From the IMG/VR virus record IMGVR_UViG_3300050120_000152, positions 186,001 through 250,000 of that record: a stretch of 64,000 nucleotides of DNA; one strand, 5' to 3'. The notes under the pieces were generated by a model. That model did no database searches, was not told where the DNA came from, and saw only the letters and a list, made by a program, of their open reading frames with translations. Made by a program: the position numbers and the translations under genes. Positions 1-6,887 of the stretch are shown here, in pieces. Each line of letters starts with the position of its first letter. Position 1 is the first letter of the stretch.

Positions 1-37
1 TAATGGATTGTCAACTACTATATTTTAAGAATACTCC

Positions 38-66
38 TTGCAAAGATTGCCCAAAAGGAATATAAT
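38..66 (+). promoter_or_regulatory. sigma70-type early promoter
   Basis: TTGCAA(38-43)-17 bp-TATAAT(61-66). Confidence 0.75.
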
Positions 67-90
67 GCATTACCAAAGAGGAAAATCGTC

Positions 91-249
91 ATGATTACCA
101 TTCGTCGGTTGCATATTTTTGCATTCATTCTGGGATTTGTGCAGATGTGGCATTTTGGTGATGCAGTGGGTTGTCCTACTGCTGATGATAAAATCTGGAA
201 TGATGCATACGAAAATGGTGCTGACATAGCACAACGCTTGCACCATTGA
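91..249 (+). CDS. small hypothetical protein with hydrophobic N-terminus (52 aa)
   Basis: Hand-translated MITIRRLHIFAFILGFVQMW...QRLHH*; AGAGG at 77-81; promoter upstream; below the ORF-track length cutoff. Confidence 0.55.
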   Translation: MITIRRLHIFAFILGFVQMWHFGDAVGCPTADDKIWNDAYENGADIAQRLHH

Positions 250-266
250 TTCAATTCTGTTATAAT
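238..266 (+). promoter_or_regulatory. sigma70-type early promoter
   Basis: TTGCAC-17-TATAAT. Confidence 0.75.
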
Positions 267-290
267 ACACGCATCAAAAGGAGATTCATC

Positions 291-452
291 ATGCCGAATT
301 TTGTAATCCAACATGAATTTGACTTTGAACCGACATATATTGTCAATAAAGATGATGAAGATCAATACATCAAACTCGATGTGAATATTCCGTGGAAAAA
401 TCGGTTGACTGCTGCGGAAAAGATTGCCAAAATTCTTAATGAATTGGAGTAA
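291..452 (+). CDS. small hypothetical protein (53 aa)
   Basis: Track ORF 246..452; ATG at 291 follows an AGGAG RBS. Confidence 0.65.
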   Translation: MPNFVIQHEFDFEPTYIVNKDDEDQYIKLDVNIPWKNRLTAAEKIAKILNELE

Positions 453-457
453 TAATC

Positions 458-628
458 ATGGTCATTCAACTTGCCGAGTATTGTGACAAACGTGCTGAAC
501 TGACGTTTGAAATCCTTGCAAACTCTGCTAACGGCATGTTGGAACCGCAGCGTAGCAGACTGGTGCGTATTCTCAAGCATTGTCAAAAGGTCAAACGGTT
601 TCAGCGTAAACTGACAAAAGTTGCTTGA
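458..628 (+). CDS. small basic hypothetical protein (56 aa)
   Basis: Hand-translated MVIQLAEYCDKRAELTFE...RKLTKVA*; stop lies inside the next TTGACA. Confidence 0.55.
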   Translation: MVIQLAEYCDKRAELTFEILANSANGMLEPQRSRLVRILKHCQKVKRFQRKLTKVA

Positions 629-654
629 CAATCTGAAATATTGTAGGATATAAA
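621..654 (+). promoter_or_regulatory. sigma70-type early promoter
   Basis: TTGCTT-17-TAGGAT or TTGACA(625-630)-18-TATAAA. Confidence 0.6.
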
Positions 655-673
655 TCAACCAAGGAACATTAGC

Positions 674-835
674 ATGGACAACATTCTTCCCGAAATCAAG
701 TATCGTGGATTGTCCTATACGCTGGACAAAGTTGAAAATGGTGTAGTATACTGGACTTGTCTCTATTCACGCCATACGGATCAATGTTCGGTGGATACGT
801 GGAAGTCTGGCTCCCCCTATGAGGAACGCACCTGA
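674..835 (+). CDS. small hypothetical protein (53 aa)
   Basis: MDNILPEIKYRGLSYTLDKVENGVVYW...; AAGGA RBS; TGA overlaps the ATG at 835. Confidence 0.6.
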   Translation: MDNILPEIKYRGLSYTLDKVENGVVYWTCLYSRHTDQCSVDTWKSGSPYEERT

Positions 836-1110
836 TGAAGCCAAAGACCCTGATTTTCATGCTGCTGATGCTATGCATGGGCATAGCTCATGCGGCACAA
901 TCACACGCATCCTTTTCCATATCGGTTATGGTTGTGGACGCATGTGATACGCATGTATCGAATAGTGGCAAGATTGTTGCGCAGTGTTCGGGAAAGAATA
1001 CCGCAGCGCAGCAGGTTATCACGGTCACACCACCAACACCTGAACAGCTGGCGATGTATGGTGTAAGCTATACATCACAGAATGTGAAAGTCGTTACAAT
1101 AACCTACTAA
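835..1110 (+). CDS. secreted mini fimbrial-subunit-like protein
   Basis: Signal peptide MKPKTLIFMLLMLCMGIAHA, ASFSISVMVV strand, Cys pair, C-terminal VVTITY. Confidence 0.6.
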   Translation: MKPKTLIFMLLMLCMGIAHAAQSHASFSISVMVVDACDTHVSNSGKIVAQCSGKNTAAQQVITVTPPTPEQLAMYGVSYTSQNVKVVTITY

Positions 1111-1115
1111 AAAGC

Positions 1116-1144
1116 TTGCTACTAGCATGTGACAATGTTATAAT
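1116..1144 (+). promoter_or_regulatory. sigma70-type early promoter (extended -10)
   Basis: TTGCTA-17-TGtTATAAT. Confidence 0.75.
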
Positions 1145-1172
1145 AATCCCATCATTCAAGGGAAACCCCATC

Positions 1173-1430
1173 ATGTCGAAAGCATACCGTTTTGAAGTGA
1201 TCCCCCATATGGTTTGGAAACATGCCCTTACTGGTGCACAGGCTTCTATCTATGGTGCGTCTCCGCAGGGTGATGATTGGTCTATTGTGGAAGATGGTTT
1301 TACCTTCCGTGACAATCGTTACAATACGGTGGGCAGCTATGGTGTTCGTGATCGGCGCACTGTCGAGGAAATCGAAGGATACCTTACCACGCAATATGGT
1401 TTCGATTGGCGCTTGCAGCATGCACAGTGA
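1173..1430 (+). CDS. hypothetical protein
   Basis: Track ORF 1116..1430; ATG 1173 follows the AAGGGAAA leader. Confidence 0.65.
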   Translation: MSKAYRFEVIPHMVWKHALTGAQASIYGASPQGDDWSIVEDGFTFRDNRYNTVGSYGVRDRRTVEEIEGYLTTQYGFDWRLQHAQ

Positions 1431-1441
1431 TAGGGTATAAT
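1413..1441 (+). promoter_or_regulatory. sigma70-type early promoter
   Basis: TTGCAG-17-TATAAT. Confidence 0.7.
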
Positions 1442-1447
1442 AATACC

Positions 1448-1663
1448 ATGAAAACACTCATTGCCATTCTGCTCTATCTAGTTCTCTTTGCTGTCATGGC
1501 TCAGAGTGGTATGATTACCTTCACTGGTAGAATTTTGGCAAGCAATGGCCCTAGCATCACGACACAATCTGTCGTAACATCCTCAAATATTCCGCTGGTG
1601 AGTTATGCACTGAGTCGTGTACAAGGTAGCTCAGTCCTCATCAAAACCATTACATATCAGTAA
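1448..1663 (+). CDS. secreted mini fimbrial-subunit-like protein
   Basis: Signal peptide MKTLIAILLYLVLFAVMA, SGMITFTGRI (fimbrial-type GxITFTGxI), C-terminal KTITYQ. Confidence 0.6.
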   Translation: MKTLIAILLYLVLFAVMAQSGMITFTGRILASNGPSITTQSVVTSSNIPLVSYALSRVQGSSVLIKTITYQ

Positions 1664-1677
1664 AGCTAAAGTCTTGT

Positions 1678-1780
1678 GCGAGCCTACCTCTTAAAGGATA
1701 GGACAAAGGTGAATTAACACCTGACGGCTACTCAATGCCGTGCTATCTCCAAAGGGTAGCAGCCTGAATTAACAGGTCGC
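1678..1780 (+). ncRNA. candidate multibranch structured RNA (unassigned)
   Basis: Five contiguous hairpins closed by GCGA(1678-81)/TCGC(1777-80); G-U pairs favour the + strand; no ORF. Confidence 0.45.
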
Positions 1781-1787
1781 CATCCAT

Positions 1788-1814
1788 TGCTTCCCATCCA
1801 CATCCCTATTTTAC
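1788..1814. repeat. 27-bp direct repeat, copy 1 (copy 2 at 6666-6692)
   Basis: tgcttcccatccacatccctattttac is identical at both sites. Confidence 0.95.
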
Positions 1815-1837
1815 ATTACATATAATACAATTGTCAA
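1808..1837 (-). promoter_or_regulatory. leftward sigma70-type promoter
   Basis: Minus strand TTGACA-18-TAAAAT. Confidence 0.55.
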
Positions 1838-1860
1838 TAGATATTATAATAAAATAGTTC

Positions 1861-1889
1861 TTGCATTACGGTACATACTTGTTTATAAT
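1861..1889 (+). promoter_or_regulatory. sigma70-type early promoter
   Basis: TTGCAT-17-TATAAT. Confidence 0.75.
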
Positions 1890-1917
1890 GGCTCATCATT
1901 TAATCATGGACACCAGC

Positions 1918-2256
1918 ATGACTCGCAATGAATTACATAAGCTGCTCATCAAATTGCGCACTATGGTTAAGGCTGGTAACTATCCTTCTAACTATAGGAC
2001 TGGTATCTGTGGCAATTTGGACACGTTATGCGAGTTTTACGTATCGCCGTTAGTACGTAAGTATCAGGAATCATGGACATGGTATAGCGGTGATTGGATT
2101 TTTCCTGTTCCTGCTCCTTCAATGTATGATGATACATACATTGATCCTAAAGCTGGTGCTGTAGCTGTGTATATGAATACCCGCAACAAATGGACAGGTG
2201 AATATGGTAAGCTACGCTTGTCGCTGCTGAACCATCTGATTCGGATGACACGATAA
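1918..2256 (+). CDS. hypothetical protein, paralogue of 5431..5718
   Basis: Shared GIC.N, W...SG...PVP and KW.GE.G..RL.LLN.LIR.TR motifs; start chosen by alignment with the paralogue. Confidence 0.7.
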   Translation: MTRNELHKLLIKLRTMVKAGNYPSNYRTGICGNLDTLCEFYVSPLVRKYQESWTWYSGDWIFPVPAPSMYDDTYIDPKAGAVAVYMNTRNKWTGEYGKLRLSLLNHLIRMTR

Positions 2257-2528
2257 TGCATAATATGTTCATGTTCCTTGCTGACATGCTGAACCATTCC
2301 CCTTGGCATGGAATCATCATGATGGTGCTATGGGTCATTCTGTGGTTGTTCTTACTTACCTGTCTGTTTACATGGTTGTCACCGTGGAAGCCAGACCCTG
2401 ATGGTAATCCATATCGCAGGTATTGTAAAGAATGCGGAACAGGTCAGAGTTTATGGGGCCGAACATACAATGATTATACGGAATGGTGTACATTCTTGCC
2501 AGTGCATCCATGCTCAAAAAAGCATTGA
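2256..2528 (+). CDS. membrane protein with C-terminal CxxC
   Basis: Hydrophobic helix followed by CKEC; coupled to the upstream stop. Confidence 0.65.
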   Translation: MHNMFMFLADMLNHSPWHGIIMMVLWVILWLFLLTCLFTWLSPWKPDPDGNPYRRYCKECGTGQSLWGRTYNDYTEWCTFLPVHPCSKKH

Positions 2529-2553
2529 CAATGTTCTAGCATTGTAGGAGAAT
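2525..2553 (+). promoter_or_regulatory. sigma70-type early promoter
   Basis: TTGACA-17-GAGAAT; the -35 contains the upstream TGA stop. Confidence 0.55.
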
Positions 2554-2560
2554 GTTCCTC

Positions 2561-2656
2561 ATGGAAACCTATTTCACTACTGAAGAACTTGCCCAAGCTG
2601 ATGCCATCCGTGCCGAGCTTGAAACCGCTGAATATCTGGACTATTCCCATGCATGA
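2561..2656 (+). CDS. small acidic protein (31 aa)
   Basis: METYFTTEELAQADAIRAELETAEYLDYSHA*; AGGAG upstream; overlaps the next ATG. Confidence 0.5.
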   Translation: METYFTTEELAQADAIRAELETAEYLDYSHA

Positions 2657-2969
2657 TACCCAAAAGAACTGTCGTGATCTGGCTGATCATCTGGAACATA
2701 ACGTAACGGATGCCGAGTATAATCAGAGCAGTTTTCATTGCGAATCTCGTAATACATCTTGTGCGGCTGGTCATGCTGCATGGGTTGGTATCGGTGGTTT
2801 GGTTATGGATGTATATGATGTTCCTTATCATACCGATTTCGTCAATAGTCTCAGTCGTTATGGAAAATCCATTATCACAGTTTTTGGCGAAGATAAACGA
2901 TATATTTTTCATAGTGATAGGGGTGATTTAACTCGATTGGATGCCATTGATTTGCTACGCAAGGCATAA
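2649..2969 (+). CDS. hypothetical protein
   Basis: Track ORF 2589..2969; likely start MHDTQK; FHCESRNTSCAAGHAA motif. Confidence 0.65.
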   Translation: MHDTQKNCRDLADHLEHNVTDAEYNQSSFHCESRNTSCAAGHAAWVGIGGLVMDVYDVPYHTDFVNSLSRYGKSIITVFGEDKRYIFHSDRGDLTRLDAIDLLRKA

Positions 2970-2971
2970 CC

Positions 2972-3070
2972 ATGATTCTCGACGTGAAAGACCTTACTCT
3001 GGATGTGAGCGTGGAGGAAGCTTTAACGCTCATACAGACGCTTACAATCATGCTGGCAGACCCGTCATAA
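2972..3070 (+). CDS. possible 32-aa ORF overlapping hairpins
   Basis: MILDVKDLTLDVSVEEALTLIQTLTIMLADPS*. Confidence 0.35.
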   Translation: MILDVKDLTLDVSVEEALTLIQTLTIMLADPS

Positions 3071-3210
3071 GGGTTATCAGCAAGTCGTTACTCAAACGCT
3101 TCCATTGATCGTACAGGACGGTTCCAAGCCTAATGGGGAACCTCGTTACATGACTGACTCATTTTGCCTGATGATGGAAAACAAAGGTTGACAAGCCTGT
3201 CCATTGGGGA

Positions 3211-3239
3211 TTGACACGGCAGTTTCTTTGTATTAGAAT
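3211..3239 (+). promoter_or_regulatory. sigma70-type early promoter
   Basis: TTGACA-17-TAGAAT. Confidence 0.75.
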
Positions 3240-3266
3240 GCTTGCCTACTATATAAGGATTTTATC

Positions 3267-3671
3267 ATGTTTGAACTCAATGCTGAACATCAAGCTATTG
3301 TCAAAGGCATGCGCGAATGCATGTTGCATGACTTTAAACGTGATGAAGTTTTTTGGAAAATGGTGGAACTCTGCCCATCGGTGTTCATCTTGGCATTGAA
3401 TGGTGGTATCATTCGTGTTGCATGGCCTGTTCATATTGCACCAACCATCGCAGATTTAGCCTCCGTGCCATGTCTGACCGATGGTGAATATAACATGCTG
3501 CGAAACCATTGCCACGCTAAAGATAAAGTCGCAGCCATCAAAGCATTGCGTGCTATGCGTGGCATGGCTTTGAAGGATGCAAAAGATATTGTGGAAGCAT
3601 GGTTCTATGAACCCGATTCAGACTATGGGAATTCATATTGGCGATTGAAACGGGTTCAGCCTGATGAATAG
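3267..3671 (+). CDS. protein with ribosomal L7/L12 C-terminal-like motif
   Basis: KVAAIKALRAMRGMALKDAKDIVE resembles the bL12 CTD (KI.vIK.vR.itglgLkeAKdlVe). Confidence 0.65.
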   Translation: MFELNAEHQAIVKGMRECMLHDFKRDEVFWKMVELCPSVFILALNGGIIRVAWPVHIAPTIADLASVPCLTDGEYNMLRNHCHAKDKVAAIKALRAMRGMALKDAKDIVEAWFYEPDSDYGNSYWRLKRVQPDE

Positions 3672-3849
3672 CATAGGCATGACCAATCTTTTCCTTTATG
3701 TTGGTGTAGGCTTTGCCATCTTTGATGCATTGTTTTTAATCGGTTATCTCTATGGTAATGACAGACGATACGGAACAGGTGCTGTCTGGAGTGGTGGCCT
3801 TGCATTGTTATGCTGGCTCATTGCTGGACTCATTGCATTCTTTACTTGA
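3664..3849 (+). CDS. small two-TM membrane protein
   Basis: Two hydrophobic segments; stop lies in the next TTGACA. Confidence 0.65.
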   Translation: MNSIGMTNLFLYVGVGFAIFDALFLIGYLYGNDRRYGTGAVWSGGLALLCWLIAGLIAFFT

Positions 3850-3875
3850 CAATCGCTGCGGACTTCTATTATAAT
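3846..3875 (+). promoter_or_regulatory. sigma70-type early promoter
   Basis: TTGACA-18-TATAAT. Confidence 0.7.
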
Positions 3876-3903
3876 AGCCTGAATTCCATACTGGATAGTG
3901 ATC

Positions 3904-4002
3904 ATGGCAAAACTTTCGGATAACCCCACGGGTGTTCATATCCTCATGGCTGTCATCGTGGTGTTACTCATCATCCCATTCTGCTGGATGACTGGTGTAT
4001 GA
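3904..4002 (+). CDS. small single-TM protein (32 aa)
   Basis: MAKLSDNPTGVHILMAVIVVLLIIPFCWMTGV*. Confidence 0.5.
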   Translation: MAKLSDNPTGVHILMAVIVVLLIIPFCWMTGV

Positions 4003-4103
4003 GACTGCGCATTTTTCCACATGAAGCTCCTAACAGCAAATGGTCTGAATATACGATCCCTTTGAATAATTTCAAAGAATATATTGACAACGTAATAAAA
4101 TAG
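3999..4103 (+). CDS. small hypothetical protein (34 aa)
   Basis: ATGA overlap with the previous gene; MRLRIFPHEAPNSKWSEYTIP... Confidence 0.45.
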   Translation: MRLRIFPHEAPNSKWSEYTIPLNNFKEYIDNVIK

Positions 4104-4111
4104 GGTATAAT
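4084..4111 (+). promoter_or_regulatory. sigma70-type early promoter
   Basis: TTGACA-16-TATAAT. Confidence 0.7.
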
Positions 4112-4138
4112 AAACCCATCATCAATAGGTGAACTGTC

Positions 4139-4312
4139 ATGAAAGTCAGAGAACTGATTGCCCTACTTCAAACATTCGATCCTGAGCTGGACGTTAACAA
4201 AACGGACAGTGCTGGTTGCAATGAATGTAATGAATTTGGTGACGATCATTTCAACGATATTTATGATGTACGCCTTTATGAGGTCTATCTAGACAAGCTA
4301 GTTGTATTGTAA
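4139..4312 (+). CDS. small phage protein (57 aa)
   Basis: MKVRELIALLQTFDPELDV..., a common small phage protein N-terminus. Confidence 0.65.
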   Translation: MKVRELIALLQTFDPELDVNKTDSAGCNECNEFGDDHFNDIYDVRLYEVYLDKLVVL

Positions 4313-4318
4313 TAGAAT
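4290..4318 (+). promoter_or_regulatory. sigma70-type early promoter
   Basis: TAGACA-17-TAGAAT. Confidence 0.65.
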
Positions 4319-4348
4319 ACTATTATTCCAACCAACTGAGACCATGTG

Positions 4349-4822
4349 ATGACTTCACCAGTTCGCGGGACGCATTATTCTCTCGCTCAATCTCCCGCTG
4401 AGATGTGGCAGAAAGCTGCTGCTATCGCTGCAAAGCTGATCGCTGATGCCAAAGCCCACAAGGCCATTCCGGTGCTGGCTTATACTGGCATGTCTGGGAC
4501 TGCAACGGCAACCGCAGTTTCGTTGTGGCTGGCAACGAAAAAGCCGAGATTCAAATTTTATATGATCTATGTTCGCAAGCCACGCGAAAAATCACATGGA
4601 AGAAAAATCGAACACAATTTCGAGTATGATTTTCTCATTGACGAAAGCATTACCAAAAAGAAATTTTTCATTGCTTTCGTGGATGATCTGATCTGTTCGG
4701 GTGCCACTAGCAAACGTGTACTAGCAAAAATTGCCGCAGAGTGCAAGACCACCAACTACATGCTGTTCACAAAATTGGCTGGTGCCGTGAACAATGAGGG
4801 ATACTGTACCAGCGATTACTAA
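4349..4822 (+). CDS. type I phosphoribosyltransferase-like protein
   Basis: PRPP-loop motif IAFVDDLICSGAT; YTGMSG loop. Confidence 0.7.
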   Translation: MTSPVRGTHYSLAQSPAEMWQKAAAIAAKLIADAKAHKAIPVLAYTGMSGTATATAVSLWLATKKPRFKFYMIYVRKPREKSHGRKIEHNFEYDFLIDESITKKKFFIAFVDDLICSGATSKRVLAKIAAECKTTNYMLFTKLAGAVNNEGYCTSDY

Positions 4823-4831
4823 AAAGAATGC

Positions 4832-4859
4832 TTGACATGGGCTAGAATTCTTTTATAAT
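4832..4859 (+). promoter_or_regulatory. sigma70-type early promoter
   Basis: TTGACA-16-TATAAT. Confidence 0.7.
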
Positions 4860-4890
4860 AGTCCCATACCAACCAACCCGGTCAAGCATC

Positions 4891-5091
4891 ATGATTTTTT
4901 CTACTGATACCAAAGCCTACGTCAATGAATTGTTTGCCGAAACTGCGGCTCATGAAGCGGCATATGCGGAAGCTGGTAATGTGATCATGGTGCCATCGCT
5001 TGAGGTCGAGTTCCCCATCGGTGAATTTCCTTACGATGATGCCGCATTCGAACGCCGTTATCCGCCATCCTATGATGTGGAGTCATTCTGA
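4891..5091 (+). CDS. small acidic hypothetical protein
   Basis: Track ORF directly after a promoter; coupled to 5091. Confidence 0.65.
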   Translation: MIFSTDTKAYVNELFAETAAHEAAYAEAGNVIMVPSLEVEFPIGEFPYDDAAFERRYPPSYDVESF

Positions 5092-5384
5092 TGGCTGTCC
5101 AGTATGAATGGGATGTGGAAACTGTCTCATGGGATGAAATCGACGGTGATCAAGTCATTGATCATTATCACTGTGTGACCTTCAAGGAAGCTCTACAACA
5201 GGCGGCGACAACTCCTGAAGATGGTTGTCGCCATGTTGTCGTGCTGGTGCGTGACGACGTTGCTGGAAGGCTCTGGGCCTATGTGGATGATATTGGTAGA
5301 ATATCGCCCATTTTCAGGGATAGTCAAGATAATGTGGCGATGTTGGTTCCTCAAAAATATCTCAGGGAAGTGTTGACAGCCTGA
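5091..5384 (+). CDS. hypothetical protein
   Basis: Track ORF; TGATG coupling. Confidence 0.7.
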   Translation: MAVQYEWDVETVSWDEIDGDQVIDHYHCVTFKEALQQAATTPEDGCRHVVVLVRDDVAGRLWAYVDDIGRISPIFRDSQDNVAMLVPQKYLREVLTA

Positions 5385-5400
5385 TTCATTCTGTTATAAT
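5373..5400 (+). promoter_or_regulatory. sigma70-type early promoter
   Basis: TTGACA-16-TATAAT. Confidence 0.7.
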
Positions 5401-5430
5401 ACATTCAACCAATCACTGAGAGTATCCACC

Positions 5431-5718
5431 ATGAACCGCAAGACTTATCACATGCGTCTGCTCGCCCTGCATGACTGTGTGAAGGCTGAAGACATTCTTT
5501 ATCCTAATAGAGGCATCTGCTTTAACGTGTCAAGTCTGGGTAAGACAGATTCCGCTGCTTTCAACTTGACGGACAAGTATGCAATGGGTTGGCCGGAACA
5601 TTCAGGCATCACAAACCGCCCTGTACCGTTCGAATATGGCGCTGACCTGAAATGGGTAGGCGAAGAAGGTGCATCGCGTCTGCGACTGCTGAACTATCTC
5701 ATTCGCAAGACGCGCTGA
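5431..5718 (+). CDS. hypothetical protein, paralogue of 1918..2256
   Basis: Shared motifs, see paralogue. Confidence 0.7.
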   Translation: MNRKTYHMRLLALHDCVKAEDILYPNRGICFNVSSLGKTDSAAFNLTDKYAMGWPEHSGITNRPVPFEYGADLKWVGEEGASRLRLLNYLIRKTR

Positions 5719-5722
5719 ATGC

Positions 5723-5751
5723 TTGACAGGATGATATAGTTCTATTAGAAT
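5723..5751 (+). promoter_or_regulatory. sigma70-type early promoter
   Basis: TTGACA-17-TAGAAT. Confidence 0.75.
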
Positions 5752-5782
5752 ACTCCCACACCATCCAACAAGGCTCAAGCCC

Positions 5783-6091
5783 ATGTCCATCCTGAATGCC
5801 ACCATCGCCACCATCGCCACCATCGCCACCATCGCCACCATCGCCTATTGGTTCAGCTTCCGTGGTGAAGATCAAGAAGTGCTGTGCCTGCGCGATGTTA
5901 ACAGCGATGGCCCGTGGCATGATGCCTTTGCCTATATCCATATCGTTACTAACGGCTCCTGCCGTCACGATGATCAACTGTACAACATCATGATGGAGCT
6001 TGCTGACTTGGCTGACAGTGCATCCATCTATGCGCTTGAAATCAGCGGCGACGTGGCCTATAACGAAGCCTATCGTGGGTTGGATGCTTGA
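5783..6091 (+). CDS. N-terminally anchored hypothetical protein with (ATI)n repeat
   Basis: Track ORF; follows a promoter and C/A-rich leader like its neighbours. Confidence 0.65.
   Translation: MSILNATIATIATIATIATIAYWFSFRGEDQEVLCLRDVNSDGPWHDAFAYIHIVTNGSCRHDDQLYNIMMELADLADSASIYALEISGDVAYNEAYRGLDA
5798..5845 (+). repeat. 9-bp tandem repeat (gccaccatc)x5 + gcc
   Basis: Read directly from the sequence. Confidence 0.95.
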
Positions 6092-6116
6092 CACTCTATA
6101 ATAATCCCTGTATACT
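6088..6116 (+). promoter_or_regulatory. sigma70-type early promoter
   Basis: TTGACA-17-TATACT; the -35 contains the upstream stop. Confidence 0.7.
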
Positions 6117-6143
6117 GCACCCATCATCAAGGGGAACTCTGCT

Positions 6144-6317
6144 ATGTCATCTGCCACTGTCGCCTCTCTCACCGCTGGACTGACGCTGTTCGCTATTGAA
6201 CAGTACAATGGTCACTGTAAGGCCGTGTACTCTGATGGACGTAAGCTCATCATCTCCTATGCTGACGCTGCTCGCCTATCTATGGCGCATACCGTTACCA
6301 TCCTCAACAAACGATAG
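6144..6317 (+). CDS. small hypothetical protein (57 aa)
   Basis: MSSATVASLTAGLTLFAIEQYNGHCKAVYSDGRKLII...; AAGGGG RBS. Confidence 0.55.
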   Translation: MSSATVASLTAGLTLFAIEQYNGHCKAVYSDGRKLIISYADAARLSMAHTVTILNKR

Positions 6318-6324
6318 GCCAATT

Positions 6325-6555
6325 ATGCTCACCCTGCTAACTATCTTCTATATCTGTGCTGCATCCTGTGCTATGGGCATACTGTGTGCTACACTGTGTA
6401 TCATCCTTGCCTCTGTCTTCACTGATGACAGACTGACCACTTCCATCCCTCAAGCATTCAAGCATACTGCCAAGCATCTGGGTTATTGGTCAATAGGTAC
6501 AGGCTGTGCTGCTATCGTAGCATATAGCATACTTATGTGTCAATGGTTGACATGA
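6325..6555 (+). CDS. small two-TM membrane protein
   Basis: 3' part of track ORF 6196..6555; two hydrophobic helices. Confidence 0.6.
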   Translation: MLTLLTIFYICAASCAMGILCATLCIILASVFTDDRLTTSIPQAFKHTAKHLGYWSIGTGCAAIVAYSILMCQWLT

Positions 6556-6575
6556 CATAACCTTAGTGCTATGCT
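6547..6575 (+). promoter_or_regulatory. sigma70-type promoter with no downstream ORF
   Basis: TTGACA-17-TGcTATGCT. Confidence 0.6.
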
Positions 6576-6581
6576 TATCAT

Positions 6582-6641
6582 GCGTCACGGGTCACAGTAA
6601 CCAAGAGCCTAGCATATGTTGGCGCATGTGTCTAGGCTTTA
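6582..6641 (+). ncRNA. candidate small RNA ending in a 13-bp hairpin
   Basis: Upstream promoter, then hairpin agcctag-catatg/catgtg-ctaggct (6606-6638) followed by tt. Confidence 0.35.
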
Positions 6642-6665
6642 CTATGTCCTATGCTGTCACTGCTA

Positions 6666-6692
6666 TGCTTCCCATCCACATCCCTATTTTAC
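6666..6692. repeat. 27-bp direct repeat, copy 2
   Basis: Identical to 1788-1814; contains a minus-strand extended -10 TGgTAAAAT. Confidence 0.95.
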
Positions 6693-6699
6693 CATAGCA

Positions 6700-6887
6700 T
6701 AGCTGAACGTACCATGAACAGGCTGGGCTATCGTTCAGCTAGGGTACAGGTAGGGTGTGGTATGCTATACATGCTGAGACAAGTTTAAGTTTTTAATCAA
6801 TTACTTTTTTTATTTAATACAATAGCCCCCTATACCCTAGGCTGAGCCTGAACGTATATCAAATCAATATAAAAATTTTTTTATATT
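6700..6887. repeat. nested inverted repeats around an AT-rich tract
   Basis: tagctgaacg 6700-09 / cgttcagcta 6732-41; taccctag..ctgaacg 6833-54 mirrors 6732-46; aatataaaaa/tttttatatt 6866-87. Confidence 0.75.

Follow-up and report, generated by a model that had tools for sequence, protein, structure and literature searches.

A predicted six-way-junction RNA with apparent two-fold symmetry in several unrelated lineages of jumbo phages

Jumbo phages carry large sets of tRNA and tmRNA genes, the purpose of which is debated, and to our knowledge very few phage-specific structured RNAs are known. A candidate for such an RNA is located on the plus strand at positions 1678-1780 of the window, the 64,000-nt stretch of DNA analyzed here, which represents positions 186,001-250,000 of a 340,344-bp virus record with direct terminal repeats and a GC content of 34.7% (G000). 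An original prediction made from the letters of the window had described this stretch as a compact noncoding six-way junction that could be a novel noncoding RNA, a protein sponge, or a recognition structure in single-stranded DNA. This raises the question whether the 103 nt encode a genuine RNA and, if so, whether it belongs to a known family and what it could do.

The minimum-energy fold of 1678-1780 (+) has the proposed architecture, with a closing stem of 3-4 bp (P1) and five back-to-back hairpins (H1-H5) in a closed six-way junction, and the centroid structure is the same. Its energy of -38.0 kcal/mol compares with -23.3 +/- 3.3 kcal/mol for 200 dinucleotide-preserving shuffles (z -4.5), none of which folds as well. 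The minus strand folds more weakly (z -2.2) and is equaled or surpassed by 6 of 200 shuffles. As predicted, the stretch is free of ORFs: none of at least 30 aa overlaps window positions 1664-1860 on either strand. The GC content of the element is 0.50 versus 0.347 for the whole genome.

In the minimum-energy fold, all parts of which lie on the plus strand, P1 is formed by a 5' strand at 1678-1681 and a 3' strand at 1778-1780 (CGC); GCG pairs with 1778-1780, and A1681-U1777 is an alternative fourth pair. H1 (1683-1702) is a 7-bp hairpin with a bulged A and the loop CUUAA, and carries the UAYC../..GGRUA helix of the family described below. It is followed by H2 (1707-1722; GGUG-AAUUAA-CACC), which exposes the loop AAUUAA within the conserved motif UGAA-NN-AACA, and by H3 (1724-1741), which has a 5-bp stem and an 8-nt loop and is free in sequence while keeping its shape. 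H4 (1742-1760), a 7-bp hairpin with the loop CCAAA and two G-U pairs, corresponds to H1, and H5 (1762-1777; (G)CCUG-AAUUAA-CAGG(U)), again with the loop AAUUAA, corresponds to H2. Four of the five hairpins have exactly the limits originally given, whereas H4 had been placed at 1741-1761, one base too far on each side. The conserved words of this copy are GUGAAUUAACAC, CUGAAUUAACAG, CCUACCU/AGGAUAGG, and GCUAUCU/GGGUAGC. The word TGAATTAACA occurs twice in the element, 55 bp apart, and an additional copy at G000:251,335 lies within a coding frame. According to these models, the fold is autonomous, with both ends locked in P1.

The element is surrounded by numerous small ORFs, every one of which has a near-consensus promoter of the sigma-70 type. 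Directly upstream, an ORF at 1448-1663 (+) encodes a signal-peptide-like protein of 71 aa without match in Pfam, PHROG, or PADLOC, and is preceded by a TTGCAG-17-TATAAT site at 1413-1441 that was read by eye. Since there is no terminator in between, the element is most simply regarded as the 3' part of the transcript of this ORF. Together with an ORF at 835-1110 (+), for which no Pfam, PHROG, or PADLOC match was found either, the ORF at 1448-1663 had earlier been labeled a mini-pilin; both have signal-peptide-like N-termini and similar C-terminal ends (...VTITY and ...KTITYQ). On the other side, the element is immediately followed at 1786-1826 (+) by TGCTTCCCATCCACnnCCCTATTTTAC, a repeated motif of about 35 nt that runs into TATAAT and probably marks the start of the next transcription unit or cassette. 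The following ORF at 1918-2256 (+) encodes 112 aa and matches phrog_8153 and phrog_13228, both of unknown function. Relatives of this protein were found neither in viral contigs nor in G001, and it does not occur beside the element in other phages. A paralogous ORF is located at 5431-5718 (+); the matches of this pair are phrog_8153, phrog_13228, and phrog_28830, and the two have a common C-terminal ...RL.LLN.LIR.TR.

Relatives of the element were not found by sequence-similarity searches, and a blastn search of 50,697 phage records, either cultured or deposited, yielded no match to the region or to three members of the family. A covariance model built from the window sequence alone detected no second copy in G000 and none in G001, and the element has no paralogues within G000. 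G001, a metagenomic record of 350 kb, is the nearest metagenomic relative of G000 (48% for the large subunit of topoisomerase II), while the nearest cultured phages according to the same protein are Ralstonia phage RsoM2USA (41.8% aa identity) and Xanthomonas phage XacN1 (40%). Pattern searches were more successful. Matches to a first pattern, consisting of two identical loop-plus-stem words at the observed spacing, were screened with this covariance model and led to the viral contigs L167 and L134, and a pattern scan of a metagenome collection led to L191, L192, and L194. A second pattern restricted to H1 and H2 found eight more viral contigs (labels L195-L198 and L201-L206), and a pattern with a freed H2 loop found L247 and L248. 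With pattern scans and covariance models, the same six-way junction was thus identified in about 20 contigs with 13 distinct sequences from six lineages, which are represented by the window, L192, L194, the L167 group, the large L195-L206 subfamily, and L247. These are the lineages known from patterns that fix parts of the sequence. Members are 102-113 nt long, and the window copy shares only 46-55% identity with the other lineages. Four complete phage genomes of 186-232 kb contain exactly one copy each, as does G000.

The assignment of the window copy to this family is further supported by a second covariance model, which was built from ten members of other phages with the window sequence excluded. 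In a scan of the whole 340-kb genome, the window element is its single match (25.7 bits, E 0.002), and L192 is also recovered. In the complete genomes of the cultured relatives RsoM2USA, XacN1, Xoo-sp13, BUDD, and CM1, either model found only partial matches below threshold. A copy was also missing from 185,579 genomes of bacteria and archaea, one per species, in two exact-pattern scans; the sole pattern match in a bacterial genome (L207) scores 9 bits and is due to chance. The weak candidates L193, L181, L199, L200, and L221 were likewise rejected as chance matches. The carriers found so far are exclusively uncultivated giant bacteriophages, from peat in the case of the window phage and from other metagenome samples. 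Three peat metagenome DNA runs carry the G000 element in identical form and, for this reason, offer no natural variants for testing.

Compensatory changes show that the fold has been kept among these homologues. In an unfitted MAFFT alignment of ten members, 99.7% of the cells are paired and 10 of 32 pairs are changed on both sides; none of 500 shuffles is as good, and pairing falls to 33-45% when the partners are slid by 1-3 columns. As the window and L192 are misaligned in H3/H4 by MAFFT alone, they were placed by the covariance model. The resulting alignment of 13 sequences, which was fitted to the model, has 97.8% paired cells and compensatory changes in 17 of 32 pairs, compared with 31-40% paired cells in slid controls; all five pairs of H3 and five of the six pairs of P1 are among those with compensatory changes. 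Because of the placement of the two sequences by the model, this alignment leans towards the structure, and the unfitted ten-sequence alignment is the unbiased control. Minimum-energy folds of the individual homologues have the same closing stem and five hairpins, except for L247, which adopts a different minimum-energy fold. Across the 13 sequences, 36 cells are G-U and 2 are A-C, and the folded molecule is therefore an RNA of the plus strand, as had been proposed from the G-U pairs of the window copy. The shuffles and the covariation in homologues thus bear out the original prediction, and 1678-1780 very probably represents a real, conserved, and functional RNA.

Conservation is distributed unevenly over the molecule. 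H2 and H5 share the hairpin frame UGAA-NN-AACA, in which NN is UU, CU, AU, or AC, and their short stems end in U-A and G-C pairs that close an A-rich hexaloop; in L247, the H2 loop is AACUAA. The invariance of H2 (GUGAAUUAACAC) is partly an artefact, because most search patterns required this word. This does not apply to H5, which was left out of the H1 and H2 pattern, and CUGAA-NN-AACAG of H5 is kept even in members that were found without asking for this motif. Kissing loops had been suggested because three loops of the window copy contain self-complementary TTAA. The tetranucleotide is indeed present in these loops but is not conserved in the homologues, whose hexaloops are AAUUAA, AACUAA, AAAUAA, and AAACAA, and this weakens the kissing-loop idea. 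H1 and H4 both contain a UAYCC/GGRUA helix (UAUCC/GGRUA) with a U-G wobble at a fixed place, each in 11 of 13 sequences. P1 and H3, in contrast, are free in sequence and fixed in shape. The junctions have almost no unpaired bases and nearly no conserved unpaired nucleotides, and the base preceding P1 is not conserved.

The two halves of the molecule resemble each other. In every member, H1 with its 3-nt linker and H2 shares 26-29 of about 36 nt with H4, its 3-nt linker, and H5 (z 3-7), and H1 is about 70% identical to H4 within the window molecule. The loops of H1 and H4 vary between lineages and are alike within a molecule, for example CUUAA/CCAAA in the window copy and UUCAUC/UUCAUC in the large subfamily. 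As judged from the sequences, the element is a pseudo-two-fold-symmetric pseudo-dimer that is closed into a ring by the connector helices P1 and H3. Selection acts on shape in P1 and H3 and on specific surfaces in the H1/H4 helices and the H2/H5 loops.

The element does not correspond to a known RNA family, which also agrees with the original prediction. Rfam 15 gave no match at gathering thresholds in the 64-kb window, and a permissive Rfam scan of window positions 1400-2000 produced only matches at chance level (E 0.3-9). In the loci of other members, no Rfam family overlaps the element, and L203:12700-13900 has no match at E<=1. A description of such an RNA was not found in the literature searched. 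The window copy combines P1 and five hairpins with covarying stems with the H2/H5 and H1/H4 motifs in two-fold symmetry, the features by which a new family can be recognized. As far as the tools used can tell, the element thus represents a previously undescribed RNA family of about 105 nt that occurs in several unrelated lineages of jumbo phages.

Individual classes of RNA can be compared with the element in turn. With a tRNA or the tRNA-like domain of tmRNA it shares a similar size and a multi-helix junction closed by a terminal stem, and it can be adjacent to such genes and co-oriented with them. Unlike a tRNA, however, it has six helices instead of four and lacks a T-loop, D-loop, anticodon loop, and CCA. 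Search tools for these RNAs do not recognize it: ARAGORN finds no gene in the window, and the Rfam models for tRNA (RF00005) and tmRNA (RF00023) are unmatched. In the whole of G000, ARAGORN makes 39 tRNA calls and one permuted-tmRNA call, all of them outside the window. One of the tRNAs, at G000:152,451-152,540 (-), has a CUA anticodon, is labeled Pyl, and is a possible amber suppressor. The permuted tmRNA is called at G000:89,769-90,200 (+), while the Rfam tmRNA model stays below its cut-off throughout G000. An intrinsic terminator was not reported at 1678-1800, where the 3' flank CAUCCAUUGC lacks a U run, and none of the ORFs within about 2 kb of the element contains a reverse transcriptase domain that would indicate a retron.

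Two like hairpins with one conserved loop frame are also found in the guanidine-II (mini-ykkC) riboswitch and in CsrB/RsmZ, and such a pair of hairpins suggests a symmetric partner or loop docking. In contrast to these RNAs, the element has A-rich AA-NN-AA loops and not ACGR or GGA, its two sites are part of a closed junction that contains two more conserved helices, and a conserved downstream gene is absent. A sponge of the CsrB/RsmZ type is not indicated, as the GGR sequences lie in the stems of H1/H4 and not in loops and only two units are repeated. The capture of a protein that had been proposed is conceivable, but as the closed junction has only two repeated sites, the RNA would then be better described as a two-site ligand than as a sponge. 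Type III antitoxin RNAs (ToxI-like RNAs and pseudo-ToxI of phages) are internally repeated short units as well, and a phage-borne version could be a decoy. The halves of the element, however, are not arranged head-to-tail as in ToxI arrays, since they are split by H3 and enclosed by P1. There is no ToxN-like gene nearby, and the flanking ORFs have no toxin match in Pfam or PADLOC.

Among the small stable RNAs encoded by phages, RNAs C and D (species 1 and 2) of the tRNA cluster of phage T4 are co-transcribed with tRNAs and excised by host RNases, and their function is unknown. By its description as a phage-encoded small stable RNA, the element may be likened to these RNAs, although the window copy, unlike them, lies outside any tRNA cluster. 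We know of no report of a six-way junction or an internal two-fold symmetry in T4-type RNAs.

The other members provide information on the genomic context. In the L167 group, the element starts 2 nt past a bona fide tmRNA (120-123 bits), which closes a tRNA array on the same strand, and in L194 it follows 5 nt after ...UCCA. In the large subfamily (L195-L206), the element lies within about 700 nt that are free of ORFs and follow a TTGACA promoter. There it begins 4-5 nt past the NCCA terminus of a conserved RNA that is tRNA-like and about 150 nt long. Thus, in three lineages only 2-5 nt separate the element from the CCA end of a preceding tmRNA or tRNA-like RNA. The tRNA-like RNA of the large subfamily combines an acceptor-like stem with a long-range helix of 8 bp (UAGAUUGG/CCAAUCUA), a T-arm-like hairpin of 4 bp and 7 nt, and nine covarying pairs, and is recognized neither by Rfam nor by ARAGORN with default settings. 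One or two tandem copies of it precede the element at L203:12990-13392 and in the equivalent stretches of L195-L202; AAUACAA linkers separate the modules of the large subfamily, and in L203-type loci further conserved noncoding sequence follows the element. The L203-type stretch looks like a noncoding-RNA operon, and the link of the element to unannotated tRNA-like RNAs suggests whole operons of this kind in these phages. A linkage to tmRNA as a general rule was rejected, as it is confined to the L167 group. Because the tmRNA is far off in genomes of the large subfamily (35-190 kb in G003-G005), the link is to CCA-ending RNAs in general.

The L192 copy is organized differently: a TTGACT-17-TATAAT promoter of its own lies about 55 nt upstream, and a small ORF about 45 nt downstream. 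At this locus (L192:1225-1375, minus strand), a perfect 11-bp outer helix UUAUCUUCUUU/AAAGAAGAUAA encloses P1 across a 5x5 internal loop and may be an RNase III site. Different lineages have unrelated genes downstream of the element, and because of this differing gene context a function cannot be read from the neighbors. G001, which is a true relative of G000, lacks the element, while other carriers lack the type of topoisomerase II found in G000; the element is therefore an accessory module that has spread horizontally.

A tentative reading, which we regard as plausible although at somewhat less than even chances for the whole model, is that of a stable, excised, trans-acting RNA with two equivalent binding surfaces. 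According to this model, the element would be made within a longer transcript, which in the window would be the mRNA of the small ORF with the element at its 3' end; elsewhere it would follow a tmRNA or tRNA-like RNA or use its own sigma-70-type promoter. Host RNases would then excise it at the A/U-rich linkers, or at the 11-bp outer helix in L192, and the element would persist as a nuclease-resistant small RNA. Release and persistence are suggested by two facts: P1 hides both ends, and three lineages place the element where nucleases of tRNA maturation already cut. A terminal stem that hides both ends is a hallmark of stable RNAs. The released RNA would act in trans, and its two equivalent surfaces would be bound by a partner that is itself symmetric, most likely a host protein that forms homodimers and takes part in RNA or translation metabolism. 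The symmetry of the partner, most simply that of a homodimer, is suggested by the equivalence of the halves and by the variable loops that change together. In addition, the A-rich hexaloops may dock into the conserved wobble helices as in a loop-receptor interaction, which would give a globular fold.

The phage genomes offer no obvious partner. Phyletic profiling found no ORF of G000 that is common to all element-bearing phages and missing from G001, a comparison of low power that covers five genomes by tblastn only. The neighboring ORFs have no match to RNA-binding, toxin, or reverse-transcriptase proteins in Pfam, PHROG, or PADLOC. With no candidate in all carriers or beside the element, the partner would be a host factor. 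Possible target sequences complementary to the loops are not enriched in G000. A more far-reaching possibility, which is doubtful at present, is that the element is the first representative of a novel functional class of jumbo-phage RNA with a pseudo-dimeric, globular, protein-free fold and an activity of its own, which would have spread together with tRNA/tmRNA toolkits. This activity could be catalysis, the sensing of a small molecule, or the specific capture and neutralization of a dimeric host nuclease of RNA processing or defense.

Alternatively, the element could act only in cis as a processing or stability module that sets an endonuclease cut, blocks 3'-to-5' exonucleases, and insulates polycistronic RNAs without a role after release. 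Such a module would account for the location behind CCA ends, with A/U-rich linkers (AAUACA, for example) in between, in three lineages, for the window copy at the 3' end of a small-ORF transcript in front of a promoter-like repeat, and for the sequestration of both ends in P1. A roadblock, however, needs no invariant hexaloop frames, fixed U-G wobbles, or two-fold symmetry at 46-55% identity, and the L192 copy is served by a promoter of its own, with no RNA gene upstream. A purely cis-acting role is thus unlikely.

The position next to CCA ends could also point to a new class of ribozyme that cleaves itself at or close to its 5' boundary and frees the 3' end of the upstream tRNA-like RNA or tmRNA. 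HDV-like, hatchet, and pistol ribozymes release neighboring RNA ends in phage tRNA arrays, and in the work of Kienbeck et al. from 2024 on theta ribozymes, phage tRNA trailers are reportedly processed by ribozymes. A pistol ribozyme (RF02679, 52.9 bits, cut-off 34.5) is encoded at L201:3889-3951 (+), about 175 nt upstream of a tRNA-Arg gene and in the same tRNA region as the element of this member, at a distance of 3.3 kb. Like the HDV-like theta, pistol, hammerhead, and hatchet ribozymes of phage tRNA arrays, the element is compact and can lie directly beside tRNA genes. It differs from them in consisting of five hairpins in one closed junction with no predicted pseudoknot and no conserved junction core. 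Moreover, no Rfam model of a known self-cleaving ribozyme class matches it, the near absence of conserved unpaired nucleotides in the junctions leaves little for an active site, the base before P1 varies, and the copies of the window and L192 have no upstream RNA to free. Self-cleavage is therefore improbable.

A riboswitch-like aptamer, in which two symmetric ligand pockets would control downstream expression, is still harder to reconcile with the data and very improbable. The pseudo-symmetry and the conserved loop and helix elements are reminiscent of tandem-hairpin aptamers, and the L192 copy is indeed situated between a promoter and an ORF. On the other hand, the downstream genes differ between lineages, an expression platform in the form of a terminator or an SD-sequestering helix is not seen, and most members follow RNA genes and do not precede ORFs. 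A DNA-level element for replication, packaging, or recombination, be it ssDNA, a cruciform, or paired protein-binding sites, is scarcely credible: the two copies of TGAATTAACA at a distance of 55 bp and the position in a variable, GC-elevated island beside a repeated motif would fit, but P1/H3 pairing is kept with free sequence, which is needless for a duplex binding site, G-U cells far outnumber A-C cells, and the ssDNA recognition structure of the original prediction fits poorly with an element that abuts tRNA/tmRNA genes, always on their strand, and starts 2-5 nt after CCA in three lineages.

Through its partner or activity, the element could reveal a new way in which phages manipulate RNA metabolism or translation of the host. 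It is a compact RNA with strong covariation and an unusual topology in at least six lineages of giant phages and is absent from the bacterial genomes scanned. Its small size and balanced GC content suit direct structural and biochemical work, for which 13 natural variants are available.

The 35-nt motif next to the element is a repeat in its own right. TGCTTCCCATCCACnnCCCTATTTTAC has seven copies in G000, all at 163-193 kb and on both strands, and three copies in G001. Besides the copy at 1786-1826, those of G000 are located at window 6666-6700 and at G000 positions 163,164 (-), 175,532 (-), 176,530 (-), 178,914 (+), and 185,201 (-). Three copies continue into TATAAT GGATTGTCAA and are promoter-like, while four continue into TGAACGTAAGCTGAATGGG and a hairpin, the stem of which differs compensatorily between copies; several copies directly follow terminator-like hairpins. 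By analogy with the promoter-stem-loop modules of T4-type phages, the motif may mark the boundary of a cassette; alternatively, it may serve as a phage-specific promoter. An ORF at 3267-3671 (+) encodes 134 aa, of which residues 84-111 give a short match to the C-terminal domain of ribosomal protein L7/L12 (PF00542; 27.9 bits, cut-off 25.9), and a short tandem repeat at window 5790-5850 has several open frames on both strands, which translate into (ATI)n, (PPS)n, and (VAM)n. The RNA element and all seven motif copies lie in a GC-elevated island at G000 165-192.7 kb (window 1-6700), which has 40-46% GC versus 31-35% on both sides and ends sharply at the last motif copy. Homologues in G001 exist for 20 of 168 raw ORFs inside this island versus 405 of 942 outside.
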